Sequence record: LC727699.1
Length of the DNA stretch: 64,000 nt
Direction: 5' to 3' (one strand)
Of this stretch, positions 17,173-32,872 are shown piece by piece; the stretch's first letter is position 1; each line of letters begins with the position of its first letter. Below the pieces are notes generated by a model, which saw only the letters and a program-made list of their open reading frames with translations, had not been told where the DNA came from and did no database searches. The position numbers and the translations under genes were made by a program.

Positions 17173-17541
17173 GTGATGCAATGTTTAACACACGTAATGA
17201 AGTTAGTGGCCGTATTAAGTACGTTGTTATACGTATCAAACCCACTAGCTGCATCGTTGGTAGTTGACGAGAATTACTGTAATGGTGTTGCACTTATAGC
17301 ACATGCCACAGCAGAAGCACGTCAGCGTAAAACACCCATTTTACAATGGGAAGAAAACCTACGATCCCTAAAAGGGTACGGCGTGAAGAACAAAGATAAC
17401 GTTCTTTACAATGTTCTCCCAGCAGCAATTAAAGAGGTGCACGTTGTGTATTCACGTAGACAAAGCCCACGTGATGCATACGTTACATCATTTAAAACCT
17501 GTATGGATAACAACTACGGTAAAGCTGTGGTTGTAAAATAA
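17173..17541 (+). CDS. Predicted exported two-Cys protein
   Basis: Signal-peptide-like MKLVAVLSTLLYVSNPLAA; ENYC...KTCM. Confidence 0.75.
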   Translation: MMQCLTHVMKLVAVLSTLLYVSNPLAASLVVDENYCNGVALIAHATAEARQRKTPILQWEENLRSLKGYGVKNKDNVLYNVLPAAIKEVHVVYSRRQSPRDAYVTSFKTCMDNNYGKAVVVK

Positions 17542-17543
17542 AT

Positions 17544-17569
17544 ACCAGCCCTTCGGGGCTGGTTTATTT
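17544..17569 (+). terminator. Intrinsic terminator
   Basis: ACCAGCCC-TTCG-GGGCTGGT followed by TTATTT. Confidence 0.85.
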
Positions 17570-17576
17570 CATCTAG

Positions 17577-17894
17577 ATGAGAATCTGTGGGTTGCAAATG
17601 TATAAAGTATTTGTTATATCAATGATAACACTAACGGCTATATCAACATGTGTAACTTTCATTATTAATATAAAAAATCATTATATTCACTGGATGGGTG
17701 TTTATAAGGTTAGATATGTATTAGATAAAATGCCCAATGGCATAAGTTATTTTTTCTATCAAAATGCTGTCCAAGACATTATAGATAAAGAATCATCTAA
17801 AATAACAAATCAACATATTTTTACATCTTTTATTTACGATATCAACTCATTGATTATATTAAAATGTAATAATAGGGAAACAGCAAATGAATGA
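17577..17894 (+). CDS. Hypothetical membrane protein
   Basis: N-terminal hydrophobic helix VFVISMITLTAISTCVTFII. Confidence 0.65.
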   Translation: MRICGLQMYKVFVISMITLTAISTCVTFIINIKNHYIHWMGVYKVRYVLDKMPNGISYFFYQNAVQDIIDKESSKITNQHIFTSFIYDINSLIILKCNNRETANE

Positions 17895-18177
17895 TATCAT
17901 GACAGTAATTATAGGTATTTTGTTTCTGATTATAATGATGGCTTTAATTAACTGGGGTTATTATGCCATCAAACACACGATAAAGTGTAACAGGCTTTAT
18001 AAAGAAGCACTATCAATTATTGACAATATGAGTGATGGTTTATCTGAATACCAGTATACAGTAGCTATTGGACGTTTACGTAAAAAGGCATACTCTATCG
18101 ACCATTTAACTGCTGTTAAAATGTTTGAAGCATTAGACTTAGTTATTAAAGATAAGTCAAGAAAGAAAAATAAATAA
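17887..18177 (+). CDS. Hypothetical membrane protein
   Basis: N-terminal hydrophobic helix IMTVIIGILFLIIMMALINW. Confidence 0.75.
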   Translation: MNDIMTVIIGILFLIIMMALINWGYYAIKHTIKCNRLYKEALSIIDNMSDGLSEYQYTVAIGRLRKKAYSIDHLTAVKMFEALDLVIKDKSRKKNK

Positions 18178-18185
18178 GCATAAAT

Positions 18186-18243
18186 AGGAGAGCTATTTAG
18201 CTCTCCTTTATTGCATTAAATTTTTTTTGAAATCTATATTACA
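18186..18243 (+). promoter_or_regulatory. Terminator plus early-promoter cassette (class B)
   Basis: AGGAGAGCT hairpin, then CATTAAATTTTTTTTGAAATC-TATATTAC-A; 30 bp identical to 33327-33356. Confidence 0.8.
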
Positions 18244-18278
18244 TATTTGGTCAAGTCATATCAAAATAGGTAGTTATA

Positions 18279-18452
18279 ATGCTAGCATTACATTCACTAC
18301 TATTATTAGTTATAGTGATTTGTTATATAATTCATAAGTGGTTGTGGTATACTTTCAATATGTTTAAACTAAAAGACATTATTAAAAATAAAGACAATTT
18401 AACTAATGATGAACTATTAAAATTACTCATTGATAAAATAAAGGCAACCTAA
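18279..18452 (+). CDS. Small membrane protein (57 aa)
   Basis: MLALHSLLLLVIVICYIIHKWLWYTF...; AGGT RBS; TAATG-coupled to the next gene. Confidence 0.7.
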   Translation: MLALHSLLLLVIVICYIIHKWLWYTFNMFKLKDIIKNKDNLTNDELLKLLIDKIKAT

Positions 18453-18919
18453 TGTATCCATTCTTTACAGGTAATGAGAAAGTTACTGTAGATGTTCTTG
18501 ATGATAAACATAATCTACATAGAAGTTGGACTGATTATAAACATCCCATCACGACGCGTGTGGACGGTAAACTAACCAATGTGTGGTATAAAGTTGAACC
18601 ACCGATGAGTGCTAAGGATATTGAAAATAACTTTACAATTGACAAAGATAAAGTTAAATTATCTAATCGTTTGCACCAAGCTTTAGATGCAACGTTGATT
18701 AAAAATGAATTAGAAGAGTTTAACAAATTAATTGATCTATGCGTAAAACATGTTAATTCAGTTAGTATTCATCTAGGTCTTACTATTTGGAAATTAGCAG
18801 ATACTGTAAAATATGAAAAAGCAGATTTAAAGAAACTATTTAATGCACATTATACCAAATCTACTGAACTTGTAAAAGAAAAGAATATAGTGCCCTCAGT
18901 AGAAGATATCTTCCTATAA
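18452..18919 (+). CDS. Hypothetical protein
   Basis: 155 aa, translationally coupled. Confidence 0.8.
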   Translation: MYPFFTGNEKVTVDVLDDKHNLHRSWTDYKHPITTRVDGKLTNVWYKVEPPMSAKDIENNFTIDKDKVKLSNRLHQALDATLIKNELEEFNKLIDLCVKHVNSVSIHLGLTIWKLADTVKYEKADLKKLFNAHYTKSTELVKEKNIVPSVEDIFL

Positions 18920-18941
18920 TTTATTTAAAGGTAATACAAAT

Positions 18942-19850
18942 ATGCTAAAGGTAAAATCATTACTCACTGGCCATATTCTTCGAGCTACCTATGATTGGTT
19001 TCTTGAGAATAACTTCAGAGATATTCTAATTGTAGCACATACTCAATTAGTACCTGATTTATCTGAGGTAGCTCTAAAGCATGCGAAAGAAGATCACACT
19101 ATCACTTTCAATATCCATCCACGCTGTGCAAAGAATTTTTATATCAGTGACGAATATATCTCTTTCAATGTAACAGTAAATGGAGTTGGGGTCAGTATTA
19201 AACTTCCTCTTTATGCAGTATTGGGTGTAGTTACACCTATTGATGATAATTCTAACGCATTCTTTGAAATGCCACTAGTAGATAGATATCTCAATGCAGA
19301 TACTATTCGTGCAACATTAGAAGGAACTGTTAATAATGTAGTTGACAAAAACCCAGTATTAACTACCGTAGGTAATGTCACTGAGGTTAATTTTAAAAAT
19401 AAAGCCGATACCACTAATGGTAAGTTAGTTGTAAGGAATACATCTGAGAATGAGCATGATCAGATGATTGAAAGCGCCATTAACAGAGTAACTGAATTTA
19501 GTAATCCAGAATTAGATGCACATATTAGAGTAGCGGTAACTGTAATTAAACAGAATGCACCAGAATTAATTATGGATTGGTGTGAGCGGGTTATTAATTG
19601 TACACGTAATGAAAACTATCAGGATAACATCAATGTACTTATGATGGAACTCCTCAGTTACCCTATTTCAAATGTGGTTAGTGAATCAACTGTGGACTCG
19701 GGTGATAATACATCTAATTCATTTGACAATGATGTAAATAAGATGGTTGAGGATTTCAATAATTCTTCCAATTCGCAGGTTATTATTAATAAACCTTCTC
19801 GTCCTACCGGTACACCAAAACTCACTGTTATTAAAGGTGGTAAGAAATGA
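18942..19850 (+). CDS. sspB: SspB-like ClpXP adaptor with central insertion
   Basis: LRATYDWFLEN...ITFNIHP...ISFNVTVNGVGVSIKLPLYAVLG aligns with E. coli SspB LLRAFYEWLLDN...IVLNIAP...VRFNARFGG...VSVPLAAVLA; C-terminus RPTGTPKLTVIKGGKK resembles the XB peptide RPALRVVK. Confidence 0.8.
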   Translation: MLKVKSLLTGHILRATYDWFLENNFRDILIVAHTQLVPDLSEVALKHAKEDHTITFNIHPRCAKNFYISDEYISFNVTVNGVGVSIKLPLYAVLGVVTPIDDNSNAFFEMPLVDRYLNADTIRATLEGTVNNVVDKNPVLTTVGNVTEVNFKNKADTTNGKLVVRNTSENEHDQMIESAINRVTEFSNPELDAHIRVAVTVIKQNAPELIMDWCERVINCTRNENYQDNINVLMMELLSYPISNVVSESTVDSGDNTSNSFDNDVNKMVEDFNNSSNSQVIINKPSRPTGTPKLTVIKGGKK

Positions 19851-20104
19851 ATGCAACTTTAGCAATTCTTTTTAGTAGTATCAGTATCGCTGGTTATCAA
19901 GCCAATGGTGCATCGCAGTCAACCGCTGAGTTCTCTGACATGGCTACTTGTTTTAGCGCGATTGAGCGCATTCAAAAACTAGCTAAAGCAAGTGCTATTC
20001 GTAATAATGTAGAGACTGTAAAAGTCAGTGATGGTGTTCTATTACGTTATTTTTCTTCTAGTACTAGTAAAGTAGAACATACTCTAATCTGTGTAAATAA
20101 ATAG
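19847..20104 (+). CDS. Small exported or membrane two-Cys protein
   Basis: Hydrophobic N-terminus; F.DMATC...LICVN pattern like 62279..62500. Confidence 0.7.
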   Translation: MNATLAILFSSISIAGYQANGASQSTAEFSDMATCFSAIERIQKLAKASAIRNNVETVKVSDGVLLRYFSSSTSKVEHTLICVNK

Positions 20105-20112
20105 GTACGGAT

Positions 20113-20820
20113 ATGTCTGAGAAAATGTATTTATCTTTTTCTGGAATTGGACACAATGACGTAATCAAACAAGATCTTAATGGATTCGTTCCAATGGATG
20201 TATCAACTATTGATAATGAAGTGGCTGATCGATTATTTTATACTCCATTCAATAGTTCTGAACCAGGTACCTCATTACCTAATGTTGCTAATGTGGTATT
20301 CAAGGTATTACCTATCCATATCGAGGATAACACTATCTGTGTTTTAGATAGTTGTTCTAGTACCGAATACTCATTGAATGACTTAGTTGATACCAGTGTC
20401 TCATCATTAGAAACATATGGCCCATTAATAGATTTACGTAGTAGTGATCCAATTGAGACATATGCTAATCAGGCAGTGTATACTTGGTTAAATAAGAATA
20501 TCTGTGATATCGAATTTGAAGTACATGGCGGGCTGCAAGTGCAACTAACTGCTGACCAAGTGCGTTCCAATGTTAATGCATTTGTAGCAGGTATTGATCT
20601 TGACATCGACGATAAATTGATGGTATATGTGGTGATTAAAATCAATGATCGTTTATACGATGCTTGGTCTAGTCAACATGTGGTGGAACCATTAACAATG
20701 TATCATGTGCAAGGTGGTCATGAGCCTATTGTCTATAGTGAGACCCATATTGAAAATAGCCTATTGCGATATGCTAAAGAGAAAGGTTGGGCTGAAATTT
20801 TGACTCGTATTGGTCTGTAA
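20113..20820 (+). CDS. Hypothetical protein
   Basis: 235 aa, AGGT RBS. Confidence 0.85.
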   Translation: MSEKMYLSFSGIGHNDVIKQDLNGFVPMDVSTIDNEVADRLFYTPFNSSEPGTSLPNVANVVFKVLPIHIEDNTICVLDSCSSTEYSLNDLVDTSVSSLETYGPLIDLRSSDPIETYANQAVYTWLNKNICDIEFEVHGGLQVQLTADQVRSNVNAFVAGIDLDIDDKLMVYVVIKINDRLYDAWSSQHVVEPLTMYHVQGGHEPIVYSETHIENSLLRYAKEKGWAEILTRIGL

Positions 20821-20884
20821 TAAAAATACTTCTTATAGACTAATAATATAGGTAAGATACTAGCCGATTGGTTAGTTGCGCTTA

Positions 20885-20904
20885 GGGAGTCCTTCGGGAC
20901 TCCC
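20885..20904 (+). terminator. UUCG hairpin (weak U-tract; terminator or stabiliser)
   Basis: GGGAGTCC-TTCG-GGACTCCC. Confidence 0.5.
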
Positions 20905-20925
20905 GTATATCGTCTAGGAGGTTTT

Positions 20926-21219
20926 ATGTATACAGTTACACTTGAACAAGTAGGACACCGTATACCGTCTAGTTTAAGTGCTTTTGTAATTAGACCGTTT
21001 GAAAATACCATTACGCATAATGATACGTCTTATTACTTGATCATGGGTAAAGATGATTTCGATAACATGCACATGGAATGGCGAGATGTAGCTGTAGTTG
21101 ATAGTCAAGCCGTTATAGTTGCTACATACACTCCATCGAAAAACTCATTTAATCTTGTAAAAAATGAATTAGGTATTCCAGTTAATATCAAATACAAACG
21201 GATAGAGGTTGATCTATGA
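20926..21219 (+). CDS. Hypothetical protein
   Basis: 97 aa, AGGAGG RBS. Confidence 0.8.
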   Translation: MYTVTLEQVGHRIPSSLSAFVIRPFENTITHNDTSYYLIMGKDDFDNMHMEWRDVAVVDSQAVIVATYTPSKNSFNLVKNELGIPVNIKYKRIEVDL

Positions 21220-21246
21220 TTACCAGTAAGGTTAGAGGAATGAAGT

Positions 21247-21447
21247 ATGGATCGTCTTGATGAAAGAATCGCATTCAGTGTAAAGTCGTACAAAATTTTC
21301 AATGCTCTCTCCCATGGCCGAGTTCGGGCATTGATTATTAACTTTAAAGATGGTAAGGGTACGATCGTATCTATTAGTGATGAGCGCCGCCATGATAAAC
21401 ATCTCTGGTTCAACTGTGGACTAGTAGACAATCCGAGGATCAAGTAA
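21247..21447 (+). CDS. Hypothetical protein
   Basis: 66 aa, TAATG-coupled to thyA. Confidence 0.7.
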   Translation: MDRLDERIAFSVKSYKIFNALSHGRVRALIINFKDGKGTIVSISDERRHDKHLWFNCGLVDNPRIK

Positions 21448-22913
21448 TGGAACAATATCTTAATTCAATCCGTTTAGTTAAAGAACACGGTGTACATAAA
21501 GGTGACCGTACTGGTACTGGTACTCAGAGCATGTTTGGTCAACAAGAACGTTATAGTCTGCGTAATAATCAGCTACCAGTTGTAACCACCAAGAAGATTC
21601 ATCTAGCTTCTGTAATTCATGAATTGTTCTGGATGCTGTCAGGTGATACTAAGGTGGATTACCTGATCGCTAATGGTGTACGCATCTGGAACGAGTGGGT
21701 TAAACCTGAAACCGCAGTATATGAGCCGATGACCGATGAGGCCGTTCTTAAAGCAGTAACTGCCCTCATTGGTGCCCCATTCGTAATGTACTTACATTGT
21801 ATGAACGATGACTCTACTCCATTCATTGAGACTGTAGCGGAATTCGAGTCGGGTATGACTCCAGAGACTATTCAGGCCTTCTGGGATGAATATCCAGTTA
21901 ACCGTGAGGAAATCCAATACATCATTGGAGTTAGCGTAACGTCGTGGAATAGGTTCGCTACTGAAGGGTTCGATGAAGCCAAAAATCCTGAAGGTATTCG
22001 TGCTGAATATAACAAGCGACTGTATCGTGCTTTGATGCATAAAGAACCAGAGCGTCTGGTCGGCGGCGATCTAGGTGCTGTTTACGGTAAGACATGGCGT
22101 AATCTTGAAGACACTCGTGTAATCCCTAAATATGAGTGGTTCGATTATGAGAAGCGTGGTTTTGACTTCGTGGCGGATATCCCAGGTACAACCATGGAAA
22201 CCGATAGATGCGTGGTTACTCGACGTATCGACCAAATCCAAGACATCATCGATCAACTTCGCACCAACCCGGATTCTCGTCGGATCATTGTTTGTGCATG
22301 GGCGCCACATCTTATTGATGAGCAGGCACTCCCACCTTGCCACGCATTTATTCAGTTCTGGACCCGTGAACTGACCGTAGATGAACGAGTGCAAGCTCTA
22401 GACCAAACCCAGTTCGAAGCTGATGCTTATCATGATAAGATTAGTGGTGAGATTACTCGTGGTCAACCTCCATTCGATAGTGCTGAGCAGGTTAAAGCAC
22501 TTCTGCGTGTCTGTCGTGGTTATGAAAAGGCTACAGATGAAGCAGTAGTAGAATGGCTGGATCAACATGGTGCTCCGAAACGAGCCATCAGTTGTCAACT
22601 CTATCAAAGATCTTGTGATACTTTCTTAGGAAAACCCTTTAACATCACATTCTATAGTCTGCTGACTCACATGTTAGCTAACCAAATGAATATGATTGCT
22701 GAAGAGTTTATCTGGACTGGTGGTGATGTACATATTTACTCTAATCACCAAGAACAGACTGATCTTCAATTAACTCGTGAACCGAAGGTTCTACCAACTA
22801 TTCGTTTCAAACAAGAAGCTATTGGTAAAGATATTCGGGAAATTGGTGTAGATGATTTTGTTATCGAAAACTACGAATATCATTCACACATTGCTGGTAA
22901 AGTTGCTGTCTAA
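21447..22913 (+). CDS. thyA: Thymidylate synthase with three in-frame insertions
   Basis: DRTGTGT, TTKK, ELFWMLSG, IWNEW, GDLGAVYG..WR, SRR, ALPPCH, LYQRSCD..LG.PFN and GDVHIYSNH. Confidence 0.95.
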   Translation: MEQYLNSIRLVKEHGVHKGDRTGTGTQSMFGQQERYSLRNNQLPVVTTKKIHLASVIHELFWMLSGDTKVDYLIANGVRIWNEWVKPETAVYEPMTDEAVLKAVTALIGAPFVMYLHCMNDDSTPFIETVAEFESGMTPETIQAFWDEYPVNREEIQYIIGVSVTSWNRFATEGFDEAKNPEGIRAEYNKRLYRALMHKEPERLVGGDLGAVYGKTWRNLEDTRVIPKYEWFDYEKRGFDFVADIPGTTMETDRCVVTRRIDQIQDIIDQLRTNPDSRRIIVCAWAPHLIDEQALPPCHAFIQFWTRELTVDERVQALDQTQFEADAYHDKISGEITRGQPPFDSAEQVKALLRVCRGYEKATDEAVVEWLDQHGAPKRAISCQLYQRSCDTFLGKPFNITFYSLLTHMLANQMNMIAEEFIWTGGDVHIYSNHQEQTDLQLTREPKVLPTIRFKQEAIGKDIREIGVDDFVIENYEYHSHIAGKVAV

Positions 22914-22920
22914 CATAAAT

Positions 22921-22945
22921 GCCTCCCTTTGGGGAGGCTTTATTT
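22921..22945 (+). terminator. Intrinsic terminator
   Basis: GCCTCCC-TTTG-GGGAGGC followed by TTTATTT. Confidence 0.85.
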
Positions 22946-23046
22946 CCCTATGGTTCATTTGGGATATTCAGCGAATACTACTATGCACAGACTCCTGCCT
23001 AGTGGACCGATGTAGTACGTAAATACAATACAAAGGAATTTGTCCT

Positions 23047-23454
23047 ATGAACAACACTGAACTGAAGCGTCAACTTGAAATGGTTATTGAACTGATGGGG
23101 GTCTTTCCTGATCCTCTCACGATCGGTATCGCCGGTAATAGAGTAACCAAAGAAACTCGCTGTAGCCTTTTTAACGGAAAAGATCCAGGTGAAGAGTTTA
23201 GTATTGGTCTTGGTATCAGTAGTCGCAAACAATGGTTGAAGCTTGCAGATCATGCACTGATTCTTACTAAGCCCGAGAAAGAGCCTATTGTCATCCCGTA
23301 CGAGGCTATATGCGAACTATCGGCACCACTGAAATTCGAAGAGGAACTTGTGAGCAAAGGTTGGTTTGTATACAACTTGCTGGGTACATCGATGTTCATG
23401 TATCTGGACACAGGTAAAGAAGAAAAACTCAAATTTGAAAAGGTTGGTGGATAA
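23047..23454 (+). CDS. Hypothetical protein
   Basis: 135 aa, AAGGA RBS, coupled to the next gene. Confidence 0.8.
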   Translation: MNNTELKRQLEMVIELMGVFPDPLTIGIAGNRVTKETRCSLFNGKDPGEEFSIGLGISSRKQWLKLADHALILTKPEKEPIVIPYEAICELSAPLKFEEELVSKGWFVYNLLGTSMFMYLDTGKEEKLKFEKVGG

Positions 23455-24287
23455 TGGATCCACGGCATCCAGTTAGCGACGAAATGCGCGCAATCATCGA
23501 TACTGAACTTAATCGCATCGAGAAGAAGTATGGTGTAAAAGTCATCTATGCCTGTGAGTCCGGTAGTCGCGGATGGGGCTTTGCTTCTATCAATAGTGAC
23601 TATGATGTTCGTTTCATTTATGTTAACCATCCGAGTCATTATGTTCGTGTGGATAATGAAGCACGTGATACTATTGAAGAGATGGTGTCTAAAGAACTAG
23701 ACCTAGCTGGTTGGAGTATCACTAAGACTCTTCAGCTTGCTTACAAGTCTAACCCCACTCTCTTGGAATGGCTAAACTCCCCAATCGTTTACCGTAAGGT
23801 TGATCGGGACTACAAGTTAATCCGTGATGCTGCGCTAAAGCACTTCATCCCTGAATCGAGTTACATGCATTATATCTCGATGGCCAAACAAACCAAAATG
23901 CGTTGGTTGTCAGATGAGAAAGTCCGGATGAAGAAATACTTCTATTCTCTTCGTCCTCTGTTGGCTGCAATTTGGGTCCGTGAAAGTCTGGAACATCCAC
24001 CGATGGTATTCCATGATCTACTGCCTCTTCTAACAGATCCTATCCTTTATAAACGTATCCAAGAACTGGTTAATGATAAGGTTGGGGCTACTGAACAGGA
24101 TCTGATAGATCGTTGCCCTATATTAGATCAGTTCATCGATTTTCAATTGAGTCGTGAGAAACCAAACTTCGGTAAATACGAACGTCCGGACATCTATGCA
24201 CTTACCGATCTAGCCTGGCATTTTGTTGACCAGTACAAGATCGACACATTCGCGAAACTACAGGGCATCGAACGAAGAAAATATTAG
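23454..24287 (+). CDS. YcgL/RlaP-family Pol-beta nucleotidyltransferase
   Basis: ESGSRGWGFASINSDYDVRFIY (GS-x-DxD), DLAGWS, SNPTLLEWL.SP and KKYFY.LRPLLA. Confidence 0.85.
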   Translation: MDPRHPVSDEMRAIIDTELNRIEKKYGVKVIYACESGSRGWGFASINSDYDVRFIYVNHPSHYVRVDNEARDTIEEMVSKELDLAGWSITKTLQLAYKSNPTLLEWLNSPIVYRKVDRDYKLIRDAALKHFIPESSYMHYISMAKQTKMRWLSDEKVRMKKYFYSLRPLLAAIWVRESLEHPPMVFHDLLPLLTDPILYKRIQELVNDKVGATEQDLIDRCPILDQFIDFQLSREKPNFGKYERPDIYALTDLAWHFVDQYKIDTFAKLQGIERRKY

Positions 24288-24336
24288 TCAATAAAGAAAA
24301 AAGTTTAATACCATCTTATTAAAAGGAAAATATTTT

Positions 24337-24837
24337 ATGCTATTTAAAGATGAACTATGCATCGAAAATATCTTAGTAAAAGAAAAACTATATCTAGTTA
24401 GAAATATTGGTAGGAATCGTGAGGTATATCCTAATCCAAAAGTAACATATAAAGATATTAAGGAATTCACTAAAATGTATGGTGTGATTCCAATGCAATT
24501 CTTAGGGCCGCTACTTCATGAAATCGTTGAACGAGAAGATTTCGCCTTAAAAGGAAAAGAAGCACAGAAATTCATTGATGATAATCCTTATACTTTAATT
24601 GAATATGGTAGCAGTTTTCATATTTACTACATTATTCGTAATTATATTATCCCAACTACTACTGATCCAGATTGTAATAAATTCACTATTAATCTTTATA
24701 AGTATAAAGAATTTCTAGAAGAGGTTACTAATAGGTTAAACATGCCACCTTTTTTGGACACCAGTGAACCTTATCGTAATTTCTTACTGACAATGCAAGA
24801 AAGTCTACGTACCATCCAGGATATTGTGGAAAATTAA
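24337..24837 (+). CDS. Hypothetical protein
   Basis: 166 aa, AAGGA RBS. Confidence 0.8.
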   Translation: MLFKDELCIENILVKEKLYLVRNIGRNREVYPNPKVTYKDIKEFTKMYGVIPMQFLGPLLHEIVEREDFALKGKEAQKFIDDNPYTLIEYGSSFHIYYIIRNYIIPTTTDPDCNKFTINLYKYKEFLEEVTNRLNMPPFLDTSEPYRNFLLTMQESLRTIQDIVEN

Positions 24838-25230: not shown

Positions 25231-25301
25231 ATTATGCATGAAGAATATGAAGCAATTTAATAGTTTAGATTAACCATTTGAAATAAATTTGGAATTAGCA
25301 A

Positions 25302-25424
25302 ATGAAAGTTAAAAATAAGCAACAGCCTAAGTTTGTCAATCTAGCTACTATGCAAGCTGCTTGGCGGCTTAATAATGCAGAACTCAAAGCTAAACGTGAA
25401 GCTAAAGAAAAGCAAAAAGAATAA
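25302..25424 (+). CDS. Small basic protein (40 aa)
   Basis: MKVKNKQQPKFVNLATMQAAWRLNNAELKAKREAKEKQKE, followed by a terminator. Confidence 0.6.
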   Translation: MKVKNKQQPKFVNLATMQAAWRLNNAELKAKREAKEKQKE

Positions 25425-25440
25425 AACTATTTAGTTGCAT

Positions 25441-25471
25441 AAAGAGAGAGGAATTTATCCTCTCTCTTTTT
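25441..25471 (+). terminator. Intrinsic terminator
   Basis: AAAGAGAGAGGA-ATTTA-TCCTCTCTCTTT. Confidence 0.8.
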
Positions 25472-25565
25472 ATGTTGTTTTATAATTTGTATACTACAGG
25501 TATATTTCAATATGGAATCTTACTTACACGTACCATTCTAGATAGAAATATCCTAACTGATATGT

Positions 25566-26093
25566 TTGTTCTTTATTCTCGGATCACTGAACCTAAAGAG
25601 GATTTTTAAGATGGTTGAGCATTTAAATAAAGATAACTTCTTTTCATGGGGTGCTGTAGTAGGTGGTGCGCTATTACAGTATTTTGAAAATGGTAAACTT
25701 GAAGGTGGGTATGATATATTTAAATTCAGTGATGATGTCAACGGCCTAGTTATTACAGGTGGTATAACGCATCGAAAAAATATCGGGATCCTGAATGGTC
25801 AAGGTGATGATGAAGATCTGTTTTTAGTATTTGTCATAAGTAATACCAATAATCCATATGTCGTATGGTATTATGATATTTATAAAGATAATGAAGGTAT
25901 TTGTTTTACGAATGCTTCACCTACCAGTGGTCGTATTTTTAAATCAGATACTGATGAAAATAATGACCTGTCGATAAGTCAATTACTTAAAGTAGTTAAA
26001 TACCTAGTAGATGAACGAGTTCGTTTAAATAAAAATATAGTTAATTTACCAGGTTATGAAATCATTGAAGAAGATAAAGACTTTCAACTATAA
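25566..26093 (+). CDS. Hypothetical protein (start uncertain)
   Basis: ORF track; GAGGA lies before the internal MVEHL start. Confidence 0.7.
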   Translation: MFFILGSLNLKRIFKMVEHLNKDNFFSWGAVVGGALLQYFENGKLEGGYDIFKFSDDVNGLVITGGITHRKNIGILNGQGDDEDLFLVFVISNTNNPYVVWYYDIYKDNEGICFTNASPTSGRIFKSDTDENNDLSISQLLKVVKYLVDERVRLNKNIVNLPGYEIIEEDKDFQL

Positions 26094-26116
26094 TAAGTCT
26101 TTTACAAAGTCACCAT

Positions 26117-26190
26117 AAAGTCCTCCCTTCGGGGAGGCTTTATATTTTATTTTTTGTATTCAAACATATTTTAACAGTATATTACTAATG
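26117..26190 (+). promoter_or_regulatory. Terminator plus early-promoter cassette (class A)
   Basis: CCTCCC-TTCG-GGGAGG, then TTCAAACATATTTTAACAG-TATATTAC (core 26178-26185). Confidence 0.8.
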
Positions 26191-26221
26191 TGAATTCAAT
26201 CTTGAAAAAAGGAGATATGTC

Positions 26222-26551
26222 ATGAATATGTCAACTATTTCCACTGGTGTTCTGGTGCTTGGTGGTATTGCATTTGGTTACCATCTCTTTGATGGGGCAC
26301 GTTCCATTTATAAAGAATGGTCGATGGAATACATTTACAAAAAGCAAATGGCTAAGGTAAAGGAGCAGCTTACCGAATATGAAAACAAGTATGTTGAGAT
26401 TCCATCAATAGCTGAAATAAATATCTATATCGAACCAGTTCTAACTGAAGCTTTAAATAAACTTGATCGGTATAGTTACAACTGCTTCTTACATGATGTC
26501 GAACAGTACATCGAGTTTATTATTGATAATTATCGTGTAGTTAATCGATAA
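26222..26551 (+). CDS. Hypothetical membrane-anchored protein
   Basis: 109 aa, AAGGAG RBS, hydrophobic N-terminus; lone gene between two cassettes. Confidence 0.8.
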   Translation: MNMSTISTGVLVLGGIAFGYHLFDGARSIYKEWSMEYIYKKQMAKVKEQLTEYENKYVEIPSIAEINIYIEPVLTEALNKLDRYSYNCFLHDVEQYIEFIIDNYRVVNR

Positions 26552-26563
26552 TAAGAGCATATG

Positions 26564-26618
26564 GCCCTCCCTTCGGGGAGGGCTATTGCACTAAATTTTA
26601 TTTGAGATATATATTACA
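26564..26618 (+). promoter_or_regulatory. Terminator plus early-promoter cassette (class B)
   Basis: 45-bp repeat of 11446-11490, then TATATTAC at 26610-26617. Confidence 0.8.
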
Positions 26619-26662
26619 TGTATGTATTACAAAATCAAATTAATGTGTCGAGGTTTTAATAG

Positions 26663-27100
26663 ATGGACGTAGTTACTAACATTTGGGAGGACGTTCTTAC
26701 GAACGTGCATCACAAACTAAAGGTAATGGCCACTACTGCTGGCGATGTCATTCATATAGTGGAACCCAAATTAAATGAAATGATTAAATCGAATATTAAT
26801 CAACTACAGACAGAAAGGTATAGTCTTAGTTTAAACAAAACTAAAGACAATAAATACTACGCAAAATACCATGATAATCATCATGGCTGGGATGTTTATT
26901 TATTTGTTGAACAAACTAGGTATGGGGCTATTGTTGGTAGTGGATTACGCCATCGTGCTAAAGAAGCTTGGGGTCTTAATAAATTCAGAGAATATAATCT
27001 TATCAAAGTAAGGTGTACTCGACAAAATAGTGTTGTTGATAGTATTGTCTTCTTCGACGATCCATCTGAATATTTTCTTAGAACTGTAAATAAATTTTAA
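26663..27100 (+). CDS. Hypothetical protein
   Basis: 145 aa, GAGGT RBS. Confidence 0.8.
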   Translation: MDVVTNIWEDVLTNVHHKLKVMATTAGDVIHIVEPKLNEMIKSNINQLQTERYSLSLNKTKDNKYYAKYHDNHHGWDVYLFVEQTRYGAIVGSGLRHRAKEAWGLNKFREYNLIKVRCTRQNSVVDSIVFFDDPSEYFLRTVNKF

Positions 27101-27120
27101 ATTAACTAAAAGGTAAAAAA

Positions 27121-28020
27121 ATGAATAATCTACAAGTTAATACCACTATTAAAGAATTACATAAACTTCTAATCTGTAATATTATTGATGGTAAACTAAT
27201 TGAATATAATGACATTGTGAAAGAACTGAAAATTACTAATGATGAATTAGATAATCTACTAATAGCTATTTCAAAGCTATCTGATACACCAATTAATAAT
27301 ATCTTTAAATCACTTTCACTAGCAATTGATCTACGTACAATTACATCCGTCATTGAAAAACTTAGTAATTCTACGAAACTATCTAAAAAAGAAATCCAGC
27401 TAGATCTGTTAACTAGGTTAGGAATAAAAGATAATTATTTTTCGAATAGTTTTACTAATGTGTATCATGAACTAAGTGATATTATCAAAAAGCTTGAATA
27501 TAGTGATAAACTATATCAATCAGATTATCAAAACTTTATTATTGATAAAGTAACTAGTCATTTTAAAGATGTATTATATTCAGCTGGTTATGCAATCAAT
27601 GATATTTATAAGTACACTGATTCTAAAGTAGTTAATGTAGATAAAAATGGACTATTGGTAGGTATGAGTATTACCAATTATAGCTTCCATAATAAGGATG
27701 AACCAATTAGGACTATTGGTTTTTCATTAATTGATAAAACCGAGCGTTGTGTTGGAAAATCTGAAACTATTAAAAAGTTTGATGTTGAAGATTTTCTTAA
27801 TACAATGGATACTATCAATATTAATCATAATGATATTATGTTTTTCTCAAAGCAGTATCGAGAAAAAGACTTAGCCATTCATAATGCGATCATGAATGAA
27901 TTTAAGGTGAACAAGATTTCAAATGATACACGTGATAATATAATATCTTATCATATTGCCATGATGGGACATAACTGTATTATCTCATTTAATCACAGTG
28001 GGCTCCTATTAAAAATTTAA
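27121..28020 (+). CDS. Hypothetical protein (299 aa)
   Basis: AT-rich ORF with AAGGT RBS. Confidence 0.85.
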
Positions 28021-28077
28021 TAGAATATTAATTAAAAATCATCTTATGTAGTCAATCTAATTAAGGAAACAAAAAGA

Positions 28078-28434
28078 ATGCCAACTTATATTGAATTAAT
28101 CAATATTGTCAATGACGATACTCCTGAAGATGATGCAGTTATTAGTGATCTGATGAGCCAAATGAATGATAAACAAACTGTTCTTGACAGTTGTCGTATC
28201 AATCATAAAGGCTATGCTTATTTTAAGTTCCATGTTAAGGGATCAATTAGTAAGGATAAACTTAAGGCTCTAAATGAAACTTTAAAAGATTCTAATCTTG
28301 TTGTGACTGATGCTAGTACACAACGTGGTTTCATGCCACCTAATAAGTTTGATGATATCACTTATACTGAAGAGAGTGTTGGTTATAGGGCAATGGTCTG
28401 GACAAGCTTCACTATTGAAAAGCTACTTGTATAA
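28078..28434 (+). CDS. Hypothetical protein
   Basis: 118 aa, AAGGA RBS, TATG upstream and a terminator downstream. Confidence 0.85.
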   Translation: MPTYIELINIVNDDTPEDDAVISDLMSQMNDKQTVLDSCRINHKGYAYFKFHVKGSISKDKLKALNETLKDSNLVVTDASTQRGFMPPNKFDDITYTEESVGYRAMVWTSFTIEKLLV

Positions 28435-28435
28435 T

Positions 28436-28461
28436 AAGAGCCCTTCGGGGCTCTTTCTATT
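28436..28461 (+). terminator. Intrinsic terminator
   Basis: AAGAGCCC-TTCG-GGGCTCTT. Confidence 0.85.
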
Positions 28462-28484
28462 TCGCAATTAGGTATCTGTATTAA

Positions 28485-28919
28485 ATGGATAAGTATCCTA
28501 TTCTACAAGCTATGTCTAAAGAAGAGGCATTTAGACTTTTAGACATACAAGGTGAGTTTAGAAAAACTCAAATGAAAGAAAGGTATTGGAATGAGGAAAC
28601 TGGTCTATGGTGGTGGGAACAACATCCCGATGTGAAATTAAGGATAGTTGCCGCCTGCAATAGATGGAAGGATGTTTATTTCATTGCAGCGAGGCATTCA
28701 TCAATCATAATGACTCAACAACAGCTAATGTATGGTGGTCTTAAGGTATTGCATGAATATGCAGGAGATGATCATGAACAAGGTTTTATTGATCAGTATG
28801 AAAACTTCCACTCTAGGGAAGAAGCAGTAATTATCGCTAAGAATAATAATCAGTTATATCGAGCTGAATTAGAAAATAGATTAGTAACTAAATATTTATT
28901 TAGTGAAGACCTATATTAG
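28485..28919 (+). CDS. Conserved-type hypothetical phage protein
   Basis: RIVAA...RH...QGFIDQ...SREEA..IA...LFSEDLY pattern seen in many phage ORFs (recognition by eye). Confidence 0.75.
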   Translation: MDKYPILQAMSKEEAFRLLDIQGEFRKTQMKERYWNEETGLWWWEQHPDVKLRIVAACNRWKDVYFIAARHSSIIMTQQQLMYGGLKVLHEYAGDDHEQGFIDQYENFHSREEAVIIAKNNNQLYRAELENRLVTKYLFSEDLY

Positions 28920-28949
28920 GTTTCCAATAATTTAAATAGGAATATAGCT

Positions 28950-29606
28950 ATGCTAATGAATGAAATTATCGATATTCTAGAAGGAGGGAAAGAGAATATT
29001 CTCTTAACTAACCATCTAGGTAATGGCAAATATTCCAATGCGGGTAATGCAATGGCTGCATCATATGCCATTGCGGCACATACTGCTGTTGGTCAATTGC
29101 GAGATGGTTCAGGAAAACCTTACTGGCATCATTTATTACAAGTAGCTGAGATGGCGCAATTATTCGACCTATCTCACGCTGCTTATAAAGCAGCATGGTT
29201 ACATGATGTAATTGAGGATACTGCTGTAACTGCTTCTGATCTAACTAAACTATTCTCAATCCCTGTTGTTAATTTAGTAACTGAACTAACAAATGTAACT
29301 TACGAAGGTAATCGTAAAACTAGGATTAGTTTACAACATGAAAGACTTTCTCGCATTTCATGGAGTGGTCAATCTCTTAAGTTACTAGATTCCATTTCAA
29401 ACATGTGGTCGATTGTTAATGATAAGCCTGATTTTGCTGAACTGTATCTGACTGAGAAAGCTCAACTAATCAGTAAGTTAAATAATTGTCACCCCGCTAT
29501 TAAAGATCTGGCTATATCTGTTCTCTATGGCAGGTGTACTATGGTTGGTGGGGATGCACTAAAAGAATATAATAAACTATTTTCTGATAATGAAATTGTA
29601 TGTTAA
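28950..29606 (+). CDS. HD-domain (p)ppGpp-hydrolase-like protein (Mesh1/SAH type)
   Basis: AH..GQLRDGSGKPY.HH..QVA, AAWLHDVIEDT, V..LT and KLLD...N. Confidence 0.8.
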   Translation: MLMNEIIDILEGGKENILLTNHLGNGKYSNAGNAMAASYAIAAHTAVGQLRDGSGKPYWHHLLQVAEMAQLFDLSHAAYKAAWLHDVIEDTAVTASDLTKLFSIPVVNLVTELTNVTYEGNRKTRISLQHERLSRISWSGQSLKLLDSISNMWSIVNDKPDFAELYLTEKAQLISKLNNCHPAIKDLAISVLYGRCTMVGGDALKEYNKLFSDNEIVC

Positions 29607-29624
29607 AATAATTACTTAATATAC

Positions 29625-29695
29625 ACCCTCCCTTCGGGGAGGGTTTTATTTATCTTTTTTTGTATTTAAACTATTTAAAAAGCTATATTACAAAT
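29625..29695 (+). promoter_or_regulatory. Terminator plus early-promoter cassette (class A-like)
   Basis: ACCCTCCC-TTCG-GGGAGGGT, then TTTAAACTATTTAAAAAGC-TATATTAC (core 29684-29691). Confidence 0.8.
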
Positions 29696-29724
29696 ATGAA
29701 TTTAATAACCAAGAGGGCAATACA

Positions 29725-29988
29725 ATGACTGAACGTTTGAAATCCGTATGGTGCGCTTGCAGCTTACTGCGTGAACGCTGGAGACACATCCAAGACATTG
29801 CTGTCGGGGATGAACATCATGTCATAGTAAAAAACGATATGCTGATGGTGTTTCGTGGTCAAGTACCGGTAGGTAGCATGTACCGGGGTGACAGTGACCC
29901 ACTCATCTACGAGGGTGGTGCACTGGAAGAATTTACTAAAGTTGTATTGGATTTAGAATTCAATACTCGTGGTGAAACCAATAGTTAA
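29725..29988 (+). CDS. Hypothetical protein
   Basis: 87 aa, GAGGG RBS. Confidence 0.75.
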   Translation: MTERLKSVWCACSLLRERWRHIQDIAVGDEHHVIVKNDMLMVFRGQVPVGSMYRGDSDPLIYEGGALEEFTKVVLDLEFNTRGETNS

Positions 29989-30014
29989 TAAAATTAATTT
30001 TGAGGTAATTCATT

Positions 30015-30422
30015 ATGAAATATGTAATTGTATTTATGTTGTCTATTGTAACTATCACTGCTAACTCGGCTGTCATGTACACTAATCGTGATTCATGCAT
30101 CGAGTTTGTAAAACAGGCAGATGAATTGTTTGTAAAAGGTGCATCTGTAACTGAAGTGCAAATGAAGACTTATGAAAGGATTCATTATATCCTTAATAAC
30201 ACTAAAGATCTAAAGACCAACCAGTCTAAAGTTGAAGAACTCACTGGTCTATTTTACCTATGGTCTAAGGTAGATAAAATGGCAATTGAGGCAAGTTTGC
30301 CACGTGCAACAAATGCTGCTAAAGTCTATAAGACCACTCCTGAGAAATTCATCATTGATGGTTATTTCCAGCGTTGTGTAGCGGCAGGTGCGTTTGAAGC
30401 AAAACCACTTACTCTAAAATAA
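30015..30422 (+). CDS. Predicted exported two-Cys protein
   Basis: Signal MKYVIVFMLSIVTITANSA; RDSC...QRCV. Confidence 0.8.
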   Translation: MKYVIVFMLSIVTITANSAVMYTNRDSCIEFVKQADELFVKGASVTEVQMKTYERIHYILNNTKDLKTNQSKVEELTGLFYLWSKVDKMAIEASLPRATNAAKVYKTTPEKFIIDGYFQRCVAAGAFEAKPLTLK

Positions 30423-30434
30423 TGGAGGTACAAC

Positions 30435-30794
30435 ATGCTTAAGAATTGGCTATTATTCCTTTTCCTGCCAATCCTGTCCATTGCATGTCAGCCTGCCCAC
30501 GCTGTAGAAGTGGGTATTACTAAGAAATCATGTAATGTGGCAGTAAATCTTTCACAAAAAGCAACTGAGCTTTATGATAAGAACCTATCCCAATTTGAGA
30601 TAATGATGCAGTTAGATATGATCTCTCGTAAGGATATGGATGACTTAGAGTTCTATGCAGGTACCGTATATGCTAAATTAAACTTAGTTGATATTCGCGT
30701 AAATAAACGAAAAGGATTTACCAATGGAGCTATTCTAGATAGGCTAGCTGAAAACTGTGTTGAAGCAATTGGTACTAAATTTAACTTGGAGTAG
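30435..30794 (+). CDS. Predicted exported two-Cys protein
   Basis: Signal MLKNWLLFLFLPILSIACQPAHA; KKSC...ENCV. Confidence 0.8.
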   Translation: MLKNWLLFLFLPILSIACQPAHAVEVGITKKSCNVAVNLSQKATELYDKNLSQFEIMMQLDMISRKDMDDLEFYAGTVYAKLNLVDIRVNKRKGFTNGAILDRLAENCVEAIGTKFNLE

Positions 30795-30797
30795 AAT

Positions 30798-31592
30798 ATG
30801 GTTAGTATTTATATTGTCATTATACTCATGGCTATGCTAGCTGCATTGACATGTGGTAATTTGGTAGATAGCTGGGTAAGGCCAGCTATTCTAAAGTGGT
30901 TAAATGATGATGTCGCTATTCATTTCACCAATGCTACCTGGATGGTTGGGGGGATCCCTAATAGTGTTCCAATGCAACTAGGTAAAGCTGTTTGGTTACC
31001 CAAATACGTGGGTGACGGAATACGTCTTTATATCACGGCTGATGAAATAAAATTTGGATGGAATGGTAAAGAAAAAGATGCTTTAGCACGAGCCATTGTT
31101 GAAGTTATCTTTATTGGTAAAAATCCAAATAGTAAACTTCTTGAAGTAAGTATTAAACCTATTTGGTTACACCCTTCTATCCAAAAAGAAAGTTTCTATT
31201 TAATGTTTGATTGGGAAAAGCTTTATACAAAAAATGAAGAGATGCGTATTTGTTGGAAGACAATACGTCACACTTTTTTCTATGGATTCCTAGGTTTGCT
31301 ATTTGGCGGTAGTGCCAATGCAGATAACCTTGTATTAACTGAACGTGGATGTGACCAATATGAAGCAATGGTGAGAACTATTGCATCTAAAGCTTATATT
31401 GGATTAGATCCAGTTATGGGTAGGGAATTCATTATTAATGATCCTGATATGTTAAATGCCCGTGAGAAAGCACAACGTAATACCCGTATCATTATCGATA
31501 TGGTGGAAACTGGACAAGAACCCAAAGACATTGCATTATGGATGAATACTCAATGTAAACAAGAAGCAGTGTCAAATTTAATCAAACAGTGA
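30798..31592 (+). CDS. Membrane protein apparently fused to an exported two-Cys module (internal ATG 31242)
   Basis: N-terminal hydrophobic helix; internal MRICWKTIRHTFFYGFLGLLFGGSANA-D signal-like segment; ERGC...TQCK. Confidence 0.75.
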   Translation: MVSIYIVIILMAMLAALTCGNLVDSWVRPAILKWLNDDVAIHFTNATWMVGGIPNSVPMQLGKAVWLPKYVGDGIRLYITADEIKFGWNGKEKDALARAIVEVIFIGKNPNSKLLEVSIKPIWLHPSIQKESFYLMFDWEKLYTKNEEMRICWKTIRHTFFYGFLGLLFGGSANADNLVLTERGCDQYEAMVRTIASKAYIGLDPVMGREFIINDPDMLNAREKAQRNTRIIIDMVETGQEPKDIALWMNTQCKQEAVSNLIKQ

Positions 31593-31605
31593 AAAAGGCA
31601 TAGAT

Positions 31606-31989
31606 ATGAAAAGAAATTTTGAAGATGATCACGTGGTAATGGCAGTGGAAGTATATGAGAAACTGAAAGAAGCTGCTGCTTATTCATTACACTCTTCTGA
31701 AATTAGTAAGATCGAACGACATATGCGTAAGTTTAATCGTGTTCAACGCGATAAACATATTGAAAATATGCATATGGAAATGCTTGAGAAACGCGAGGCT
31801 ATTAGAAAAGCAAAATCTTTCTTTTCTCAAAATGCCGGTAAAATTGGTTGCGTAGTAGATAGGCTTGTCAAAGTATGTGAAGTGTATAAAATGGATAAGT
31901 CTATGGTGGTTGTTGAGTTTCTCCAACATAAATCTAAAATTAAAGTTCCAGTAAATCCTGAAAAAATTACTATTCTTACCATTAAATAA
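31606..31989 (+). CDS. Hypothetical protein, paralogue of 6641..7243
   Basis: MKRNFEDDHVVMAVEVYEKL...RHMRKFN...AKSFFSQN versus MQRNNDPQQVIMSIEMYNSL...RHVRKMN...ARAFFEAN. Confidence 0.8.
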   Translation: MKRNFEDDHVVMAVEVYEKLKEAAAYSLHSSEISKIERHMRKFNRVQRDKHIENMHMEMLEKREAIRKAKSFFSQNAGKIGCVVDRLVKVCEVYKMDKSMVVVEFLQHKSKIKVPVNPEKITILTIK

Positions 31990-32006
31990 ATGAAGAAGGA
32001 TTTAAA

Positions 32007-32462
32007 ATGAAAAATGTAATTGCAGCAGCTTTCGCTGGTCTCATTGCCATTACCGGTATCATGTTCAATACCGCAATGGCTGAAATCAAGATTGGTAAAA
32101 AAGATGCTCAACTCACTGTGCAGTCGTGTGCAATGGTTGAAACCATTACTAAACAAGCTGTATTTCGAATGAGTGAAGGTCATAGCGCAGATGAAGTTGG
32201 TGTGCTTATGCTCAACAACTCTGCTAAACTCAAAGATGAGTTGGATACCAATAATTGGATTGCGTTAACACTCGTATTCAATAGTCTTAATAAAATCAAT
32301 AATGACCTTAACAGTAAAGAGATCCATGATTATATCCGTAGTCAAGGTTACAATGTGACTACTCCTAATCTGGCAGCTTTTATCAGCGGGTATTATGGCA
32401 ATTACTGCATGAAGCATATTGGTGAGAAATTCACTCACATGGTAATTGTTGAACTCATTTAA
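32007..32462 (+). CDS. Predicted exported two-Cys protein
   Basis: Signal MKNVIAAAFAGLIAITGIMFNTAMA; VQSC...NYCM. Confidence 0.8.
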   Translation: MKNVIAAAFAGLIAITGIMFNTAMAEIKIGKKDAQLTVQSCAMVETITKQAVFRMSEGHSADEVGVLMLNNSAKLKDELDTNNWIALTLVFNSLNKINNDLNSKEIHDYIRSQGYNVTTPNLAAFISGYYGNYCMKHIGEKFTHMVIVELI

Positions 32463-32494
32463 TTCATATCGAATACTTTCAAAAGGAAAATAGG

Positions 32495-32872
32495 ATGAAA
32501 TACGTCTTCTCGCTCATTATCACTATGGTAGCAATGTCGGTTAATGCACAACCCGTAACCGTGTCATCTTGCTACGTGCTGCACAGCTTGGCAAAGAATA
32601 TGGTTCAATTCTACACTAATGGCGGTGAGCCATTGGAGATGTATGCAATACTGCAAGATGAACTATCCATTGCCATAGATAAAAACCAGAGTGATAAGGC
32701 ACTCGCTATTAATATCGCATTGGATAATGTCGATGTAATATACCAAAATCTCACTGATCCCGCACTTAAGCTTTTGGCAAAGAGCGAGGGAAGTGATCTT
32801 GGTGAGATGCTGACTGAAAAACTCAGTAATGGGTGTTTCAATATAGTCGGCGAGGAGTTGTATGATAACTAG
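32495..32872 (+). CDS. Predicted exported two-Cys protein
   Basis: Signal MKYVFSLIITMVAMSVNA; VSSC...NGCF. Confidence 0.8.
   Translation: MKYVFSLIITMVAMSVNAQPVTVSSCYVLHSLAKNMVQFYTNGGEPLEMYAILQDELSIAIDKNQSDKALAINIALDNVDVIYQNLTDPALKLLAKSEGSDLGEMLTEKLSNGCFNIVGEELYDN

Follow-up and report, generated by a model that had tools for sequence, protein, structure and literature searches.

The 64,000-nucleotide stretch of sequence record LC727699.1 analysed here (the window) comes from the giant Pseudomonas phage phiKZ and encodes a set of small proteins that we consider likely to form an exported, disulfide-locked family of early accessory proteins. Six open reading frames (ORFs) had been singled out in a first-pass annotation, and all six are present in translation. 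In the phiKZ reference annotation they correspond to PHIKZ229, 247, 248, 249, 251 and 252 (gp229 to gp252 below), all hypothetical proteins, and no mention of any of them by locus tag or phiKZ gp number was found in the searchable literature. The 3.6-kb cluster formed around the last five matches Pseudomonas phage sp. LC at 100% identity and phiKZ at 99.9%. The sequences themselves, and the pairwise similarity of gp248 to PhiPA3 gp303 and 201phi2-1 gp367 given in the GenBank record of PhiPA3, are already public. For three things no earlier description was found: an exported, two-cysteine, multi-paralogue family with its own fold, the conserved position of this family together with its promoter motif, and a membrane-tethered gp249 encoded inside the same array.

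All six proteins carry a Sec-type signal ending in small residues, which is internal in gp249. As the first-pass annotation had proposed, one cysteine follows about 8–16 residues past the predicted cleavage site and another lies near the C-terminus. Each signal comprises a short basic segment, a hydrophobic core of 10–15 residues and a small-x-small site, the predicted sites being ANS in gp247, AHA in gp248, AMA in gp251, VNA in gp252, LAA in gp229 and, internally, ANA in gp249. In the same order, the first cysteine follows the site by 10, 10, 16, 8, 9 and 10 residues, and the last cysteine is 14, 11, 17, 11, 12 and 11 residues from the C-terminus. Two cysteines, no more and no fewer, occur in each mature part. 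Both are invariant in all homologues recovered, and signals and cysteines alike are retained in homologues down to 20–40% identity from five other phage genera or contigs. Signals were called by hydropathy and a cleavage-site heuristic, combined with conservation of the signal in orthologues. By this heuristic the proteins show the basic n-region, the h-region, the small residues at –3/–1 and the polar mature part of a Sec signal peptide of the signal peptidase I type. Export, disulfide formation and early timing are well-supported predictions.

The combination of signal and cysteine placement is rarer than expected by chance. Eight of the 62 window ORFs of 90–170 residues show the cysteine placement, and six of these eight also have a hydrophobic N-terminus, namely the five full-length flagged ORFs and gp230. 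The remaining two (at 40234 and 40831) look like chance. As to clustering, the heuristic flags 18 of the 121 ORFs in a greedy gene set of the window, about 8–10 of which look like real signals, and five signal-like ORFs fall within 30015–32872. Assuming that 8–12 of the 121 ORFs are signal-like, five signal-bearing genes in a run of eight correspond to a position-corrected P of ~0.002–0.02; the same clustering is non-significant if all 18 heuristic matches are counted.

The hydrophobic segments could also be read as uncleaved N-terminal anchors, which would tether the proteins to the inner membrane or to the lipid vesicle enclosing the injected phage genome. Clear membrane proteins (gp249, gp253, gp253.1 and gp230) are encoded alongside, and early phiKZ infection builds this vesicle from host inner-membrane lipids and proteins. 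However, the h-regions are short (~10–14 residues), every orthologue read has a small-x-small site or, in most gp248-type proteins, a lipobox-like cysteine, and the two conserved cysteines per mature part fit an oxidising compartment. We therefore regard permanent anchoring as very improbable and favour cleaved, exported proteins. It is a long shot that the Sec-type signals deliver very early proteins into or onto the vesicle around the injected genome; if the vesicle lumen were topologically periplasm-like, proteins would thereby gain entry to the first viral compartment at a stage when the protein nucleus has yet to form.

Profile comparisons place gp248, gp251 and gp252 demonstrably in one family. 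gp251 and gp252 align with a shuffle z of 6.65, and their subfamilies match over their full length with an hhalign probability of 90.6%. For the gp248 and gp251 subfamilies, also matched at full length, this probability is 43.6%, rising to 84.9% after orthologues were added. The three proteins find each other reciprocally with hidden Markov models (HMMs) at E 1e-4 to 2e-2 among the 257 window ORFs, and also among 425 ORFs. Two linking sequences (P0008 and P0009) match several paralogues, and gp251 matches PHROG 15284, the family of gp248 and PhiPA3 gp303, at E 0.0036. The core alignment contains the two invariant cysteines and an invariant glycine five residues past the second. By contrast to these core members, gp247 reaches an hhalign probability below 1% against the core, of whose HMM it is the best non-member (E 0.02–0.03); it has a full-length, colinear but weak BLASTP match to PS119XW gp302 (E 0.024). 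For gp229, hhalign detected no profile similarity to the core family or to the C-terminal module of gp249. That module itself lies outside the core, with an hhalign probability below 7% to every subfamily. Its relative in the metagenomic contig L005 stops two residues after the second cysteine and therefore is without the C-terminal strand. Scans of nine operon proteins against Pfam, PHROGs, NCBIfam and PADLOC returned self-PHROGs and chance matches only, PDB sequence searches with the family profile, gp229, gp247 and the gp249 profile gave nothing relevant, and no further paralogue was found in the 160 kb of phiKZ scanned (1–50 kb and 170–280 kb).

To obtain a structural view of the family, mature gp251 was modelled with AlphaFold2 from a nine-sequence alignment, giving a predicted local distance difference test (pLDDT) score of 94.9 and a predicted template modelling (pTM) score of 0.87. 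In the model, a strand (residues 2–10) is followed by five helices (13–31, 36–49, 56–76, 79–87 and 94–110) and a C-terminal strand (116–125), so that the protein is predicted to be mostly helical, as had been proposed from sequence. The cysteines are mature residues 16 and 109, each one turn from a strand–helix junction; if the terminal strands are paired, the two cysteines would therefore be neighbours. A Foldseek search of the PDB with this model yielded a best E of 0.42 and template modelling (TM) scores of at most 0.32 among the 50 matches listed. Against predicted viral structures, the model matched uncharacterised proteins of Phabio (TM 0.76), 201phi2-1 (0.70 and 0.52), Psa21 (0.58 and 0.50), PhiPA3 (gp303, 0.52) and PS119XW (0.53 and 0.60). 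An exact-sequence look-up identified the PhiPA3 match as the gp248 orthologue. The PS119XW match at 0.53 (prob 0.92) is the gp247-like gp302, and the other is gp264, a gp229 orthologue with 52.6% identity, which matches at TM 0.60/0.63 and prob 0.97 but at E 0.51.

Because the predicted structures of these orthologues match the gp251 model, four of the six proteins plausibly have one fold, with moderate, not strong, support for gp247 and gp229. In the models searched, this predicted fold is found in Pseudomonas jumbo phages only. The first-pass annotation had treated all six as one diversified family with a fold in common, to be checked by structure prediction. Profiles bear this out for gp248, gp251 and gp252, predicted structures of orthologues or a related protein extend it to gp248, gp229 (TM 0.60) and gp247 (TM 0.53), and the gp249 module falls outside it. 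T4 Spackle, offered as the analogue, is not among the 50 PDB matches listed for the model.

The largest of the flagged proteins proved to differ in its gene model. The segment 31242–31592 had been described as a signal-bearing two-cysteine module. Both cysteines and the signal-like segment are there. A separate secreted protein starting at 31242 was rejected, since the methionine is absent from a homologue with 30% identity that retains the full architecture over 252 residues, and the Shine-Dalgarno sequence at this point is poor; the module is thus a domain of gp249, not a gene. The architecture of the entire 264-residue protein is conserved at that same 30% identity (P0033/P0034). Its charge distribution suggests a cytoplasmic middle domain and a periplasmic module, which is perhaps released by signal peptidase.

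This two-segment topology would suit a protein that connects compartments, and T4 lysis inhibition employs small secreted early proteins. The set could thus act in lysis timing: like the antiholin T4 RI, or as sensors in the periplasm, the proteins would respond to the condition of the envelope or to further arriving phages and delay lysis, with gp249 linking its periplasmic module to a cytoplasmic domain. However, the phiKZ lysis cassette is encoded elsewhere (genes 141–144) and the paper describing it omits the flagged genes, the unit has an early-type promoter motif, and Pfam and PHROGs reveal no similarity to RI or holin families. A role in lysis timing is accordingly quite unlikely in our estimate.

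gp248 differs from the other proteins in its signal. Its mature part comprises ~96–102 residues with an isoelectric point (pI) of 5.5, and a lipobox-like cysteine followed by Q-P is found in gp248 of phiKZ, PhiPA3, PS119XW, Phabio and P0008. Four of these five have a good lipobox: the region reads F-V-G-C in PhiPA3 and Phabio and F-T-G-C in PS119XW and P0008, and S-I-A-C, atypical at –3, in phiKZ. In PhiPA3 gp303, PS119XW gp300, Phabio gp362 and P0008, G-C-Q-P-S closes the hydrophobic segment. A single relative, P0006, instead shows a plain signal without the lipobox cysteine. The automatic UniRef name of the gp248 cluster is 'Lipoprotein', and lipidation, predicted from these motifs, is likely but unproven.

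The clustered genes form one promoter-to-terminator unit behind an early-type motif, in agreement with the proposal that they lie downstream of an early promoter at 29684. A purine-rich Shine-Dalgarno-like stretch at normal spacing precedes every gene. Eight intergenic copies of the motif, all on the + strand, share ~35 bases and the same terminal 8-mer (at 2708, 18235, 26178, 26610, 29684, 33348, 36033 and 47990). Most are placed directly 3' of a terminator-like hairpin, and they delimit a series of short early-type transcription units. The 8-mer is the presumed core of the phiKZ early promoter. In PhiPA3, which belongs to another genus, and in the metagenomic contigs L005 and L014, the same motif is located between the gene for the HD phosphohydrolase and those homologous to the cluster. 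For phiKZ, 32 early promoters have been published, with an AT-rich consensus conserved around –10, –20 and –30. Early timing of the cluster is a well-founded reading of this promoter motif rather than a direct readout. gp229 lies in another transcription unit, 12.5 kb upstream from the cluster; a Shine-Dalgarno sequence precedes the start at 17173/17176, with none before 17197.

Relatives of the family are confined to a narrow group of phages. gp248 has an orthologue in PhiPA3, gp303, with 39.6% identity (tblastn E 8e-16); HMM matches reach E 1e-18 for PhiPA3 gp303 and E 7e-14 for PS119XW gp300, and gp248 matches Phabio gp362 at E 1e-40. The most widely conserved member is gp229, with 42–60% identity to proteins of at least seven other Pseudomonas jumbo phages. 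Its orthologues occur in PS119XW, BRkr, PA1C, D6, Phabio, PhiPA3 (gp269) and 201phi2-1 (gp343), and all orthologues read (P0023-25, PS119XW, 201phi2-1 and Phabio) retain the signal and the cysteine pair. Together the gp229 and gp248 types span P. aeruginosa, P. fluorescens, P. chlororaphis and P. syringae as hosts. A HMMER search of 1.84 billion representatives with a four-paralogue profile recovered only the proteins themselves, fragments and the relatives P0006 and P0008, whose genome context is that of phiKZ-like phages. A tblastn search of 50,697 phage records with gp251, P0009 and P0030 found nothing outside the same genus even at E 10, and an IMG/VR scan with gp251 found a phiKZ-type contig only. 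In the searches made, no relative was found outside Pseudomonas jumbo phages and phiKZ-like metagenomic contigs.

Partial proteins labelled Klebsiella pneumoniae, from contigs of 200–600 bp, cluster at 90% identity or score strongly with gp229, gp248, gp251 and gp252. Such short records, labelled 'Klebsiella' or 'P. aeruginosa', represent very small contigs or stretches of phage DNA within bacterial assemblies, and the Klebsiella-labelled sequences are probably phage or cross-sample DNA in those assemblies.

The position of the family is conserved as well. In L005, an HD phosphohydrolase gene is followed by a DNA ligase gene, a gene for a 112-residue protein, the gp248 and gp249 homologues, two unrelated genes, a gp251-type gene and a gp253 homologue, with all signals and cysteine pairs retained. 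PS119XW has three consecutive signal-bearing two-cysteine proteins (gp248-type, gp251-type and gp247-like) 3' of the HD gene and of one small hydrophobic protein gene. The gp248 type is retained in PhiPA3 and Phabio, and at this locus it stands alone in PhiPA3, where the homologue, like those of PS119XW, is downstream of an HD phosphohydrolase gene. The number of paralogues at the locus is one in PhiPA3, one in Phabio, three in PS119XW and four to five in phiKZ. The locus is also plastic: L005 has its ligase gene, of the NAD-dependent type (5504–7510), separating the cluster from the HD gene, gp246.1 is missing in L014 (1861–1994), and unrelated genes replace gp250 in L005.

To assess selection, dN/dS was estimated against L014, a diverged contig with the same gene order and 60–94% protein identity. 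Values of 0.03–0.23 for all genes from gp244 to gp255 indicate that the genes are functional and under purifying selection. The four exported-protein genes with estimable dS range from 0.03 to 0.16 (dS is saturated for gp251). Fast, arms-race-like evolution of the exported proteins, which we considered, is unsupported, as these values resemble those of the neighbours. The fastest-evolving gene of the operon is gp250, with 60% identity to L014 and a dN/dS of 0.23; residues 1–80 also match a further PHROG, 18482, at E 7e-13.

Published transposon insertion sequencing (TnSeq) of phiKZ recorded 4–33 insertions per gene across PHIKZ246.1 to 251, and for orf252 a viable insertion was sequenced. The operon genes are not needed for plaques to form on the laboratory host, which fits an accessory role without identifying it. 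The TnSeq authors describe the orf184-304 arm as largely non-essential and probably host-interacting or defence-related. This location would suit envelope-level counter-measures, in which the proteins inhibit periplasmic or outer-membrane defences of the host, tailocins, contact-dependent systems, or periplasmic proteases or nucleases. The very different charges of the paralogues suggest several targets, and their presence varies by genus, from the gp248 type only at the locus in PhiPA3 to three proteins in PS119XW. On the other hand, no PADLOC, Pfam or NCBIfam model matched, no periplasmic anti-defence protein with this fold is known, and conservation of the gp229 and gp248 types across four Pseudomonas hosts points to a general, not a strain-specific, target. 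We judge counter-measures of this kind unlikely.

Our best overall explanation, which we hold tentatively and at somewhat less than an even chance, is that the early accessory operon and gp229 encode exported envelope binders that cause exclusion. In this model, the early-transcribed operon and the outlying gp229 gene would supply small proteins that are sent across the inner membrane via host Sec. gp247, gp251, gp252 and gp229 would be soluble periplasmic proteins, gp248 a lipoprotein, and gp249 a membrane protein displaying its two-cysteine module in the periplasm. In the gp251-type domain of ~100 residues, the C-terminal strand would pair with the N-terminal strand around the five helices, and a disulfide from the cysteine at the start of helix 1 to that at the end of helix 5 would lock the domain, as expected after periplasmic oxidation. 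Each paralogue would then bind a different envelope component. Mature-domain pI values range from 4.2 to 9.4 across the paralogues, a spread that suggests different partners, and since the scaffold is kept while the surfaces differ so widely, binding would most likely be stoichiometric. Candidate targets are receptor organelles (type IV pili or flagella), peptidoglycan enzymes and parts of incoming phages. As a net effect, the envelope would be altered early, and later phages would be excluded or would adsorb unproductively. Exported early envelope binders are favoured because of the Spackle and Llp precedents, the pI spread and receptors with periplasmic parts, type IV pili or flagella being those used by a Phikzvirus; of the outcomes, exclusion or masking of receptors seems likeliest. 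Superinfection exclusion or blocking of envelope targets is plausible. Taken by itself, the exclusion role is possible but falls short of an even chance, and both it and the targets named here are guesses.

Several observations weigh against this explanation. Chimalliviruses are reported to co-infect one cell, so any exclusion would not be absolute. Mature-domain dN is not clearly above that of neighbouring genes, where an arms-race interface would predict otherwise. The Pfam, PHROG, NCBIfam and PDB searches linked none of the proteins, by sequence or by fold, to a known exclusion protein, and an experiment on any flagged protein was not found in the literature search. Within the set, the gp249 module has no link to the family, and gp247 and gp229 are tied to it only through predicted structures of orthologues (TM 0.53–0.60), the gp247–gp302 link being weak. 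Finally, export is called from the heuristic and from conservation, and the gp251 disulfide is predicted from the order of strands and helices in the model.

Coordinates of the flagged genes and of neighbouring features are collected in Table 1. gp253, the last gene before the first terminator, has a homologue in L005 that retains both of its cysteines. Small single-pass membrane proteins with conserved cysteine pairs are encoded close downstream of the exported proteins, gp253 being the one in phiKZ. In PS119XW and Phabio, a different membrane protein of 51–56 residues with the motif C-x-x-Y-P-L-x-C is found close 3' of the exported genes (L007 9252–9422 and L013 4357–4512). gp230 is probably a membrane protein, with no detectable similarity to the core family.

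Table 1. Features of the flagged genes and their surroundings in the window (aa, amino acids; signals, mature parts and sites are predicted)
Feature	Position	Strand	Description
PHIKZ229, 121 aa	17176–17541	+	signal-like residues 1–26 (17176–17253); mature ~95 aa, pI 9.4; two conserved Cys
gp230	17577–17894	+	adjoins gp229; long hydrophobic N-terminus; Cys 25 and 97 of 105
ORF, 85 aa	19847–20104	+	signal-like N-terminus; Cys 35 and 82; intact in window
Terminator-like hairpin	29625–29644	+	G+C-rich, with T run; closes upstream unit after gp246 (HD phosphohydrolase)
Early-promoter-like motif	29650–29691	+	AT-rich; ends in 8-mer 29684–29691
PHIKZ246.1, 87 aa	29725–29988	+	first gene of unit; without signal
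PHIKZ247, 135 aa	30015–30422	+	signal 1–18 (30015–30068); mature 117 aa, pI 8.8; Cys 28, 121
PHIKZ248, 119 aa	30435–30794	+	lipobox-like Cys18 and AHA site at residue 23; Cys 33, 108
PHIKZ249, 264 aa, one protein	30798–31592	+	two hydrophobic segments, Cys-free domain, two-Cys module
PHIKZ249 N-terminal hydrophobic segment	30798–30857	+	
PHIKZ249 internal signal-like segment	31242–31322	+	basic n-region, ANA site; after ~130-aa Cys-free domain
PHIKZ249 C-terminal two-Cys module	31323–31589	+	89 aa, pI 4.9
PHIKZ250, 127 aa	31606–31989	+	pI 9.5; sole signal-less protein within array
PHIKZ251, 151 aa	32007–32462	+	signal 1–25 (32007–32081); mature 126 aa; Cys 41, 134
PHIKZ252, 125 aa	32495–32872	+	signal 1–18 (32495–32548); mature 107 aa, pI 4.2; Cys 26, 114
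PHIKZ253, 79 aa	32862–33101	+	N-terminal hydrophobic segment; C-terminal tail with two conserved Cys
Palindromic hairpin	33104–33123		G+C-rich, T run after it on + strand; likely unit end
PHIKZ253.1, 35 aa	33184–33291	+	hydrophobic
Second terminator hairpin	33301–33320	+	next early-type motif at 33348
PHIKZ300, 73 aa	62279–62500	–	signal-like N-terminus; Cys 34 and 72

The mature part of PHIKZ300 is related to that of the 85-residue ORF at 19847 (shuffle z 4.5), and the two look like a second, smaller exported two-cysteine family. In the phiKZ reference, the stretch of this ORF differs at 2 of 258 bases, contains one in-frame stop and is annotated as two small ORFs, PHIKZ232.1 and 232.2. The window also departs from the reference in length, by ~318 bp somewhere in 15.6–25.5 kb and by a further few hundred bp, estimated from the reference coordinates of PHIKZ300, in 33–62 kb.

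Studies of nucleus-forming jumbo phages have concentrated on cytoplasmic events, namely the vesicle, nucleus, spindle and protein import, and no description of their post-entry effects on the envelope was found in the searchable literature. The locus points to export, by phiKZ and related Pseudomonas phages, of a small, conserved set of disulfide-locked proteins, apparently from the first minutes of infection, with a predicted fold that has no solved relative. If these proteins block receptors or incoming phages, they would bear on co-infection and speciation of jumbo phages and on the behaviour of phiKZ-like phages when they share a cocktail with phages that depend on pili or flagella. The family also represents a set of putative ~100-residue binders for envelope targets of P. 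aeruginosa. As the genes are dispensable and insertion mutants exist, the question is amenable to study.

Comparing the family with T4 Spackle (gp61.3) reveals a shared general architecture. Spackle is an early, periplasmic, helical protein of 97 residues with a C29–C81 disulfide, and the phiKZ proteins likewise combine an early-type gene, an export signal and a small, mostly helical mature part with one cysteine after the signal and another near the C-terminus. However, the phiKZ domain measures 96–126 residues against 75, has terminal β-strands and occurs in several paralogues. The family profile gave four chance-level matches against all PDB chains (E up to 10), none of them Spackle, and Spackle is absent among the 50 Foldseek matches listed for the gp251 model. 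The proposed analogy is thus one of general architecture, with homology unsupported by sequence or fold. As for the target of Spackle in T4, the tail lysozyme of superinfecting phage, phiKZ gp181 is annotated as a tail-associated endolysin.

[quoted passage not shown] Like Llp/Cor, they are small and combine a conserved lipobox-like cysteine, with lipidation predicted, and a cysteine pair. Unlike Llp/Cor, gp248 has ~100 residues instead of ~60 and no adjoining gene for a receptor-binding protein, its neighbours being the HD phosphohydrolase and hypothetical early genes. Phikzvirus receptors, moreover, are pili or flagella and not a TonB-dependent transporter, and gp248 gave no Pfam, PHROG or NCBIfam match to Llp/Cor. 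The T4 RI antiholin, too, is a small early protein with a signal or anchor at its N-terminus and a helical domain in the periplasm, as predicted here; the family differs from it in that Pfam and PHROGs detected no similarity and in having no link to the phiKZ lysis genes. The true relatives of the family are PhiPA3 gp303, 201phi2-1 gp367, Phabio gp362 and PS119XW gp300–302, uncharacterised proteins with the same predicted fold.

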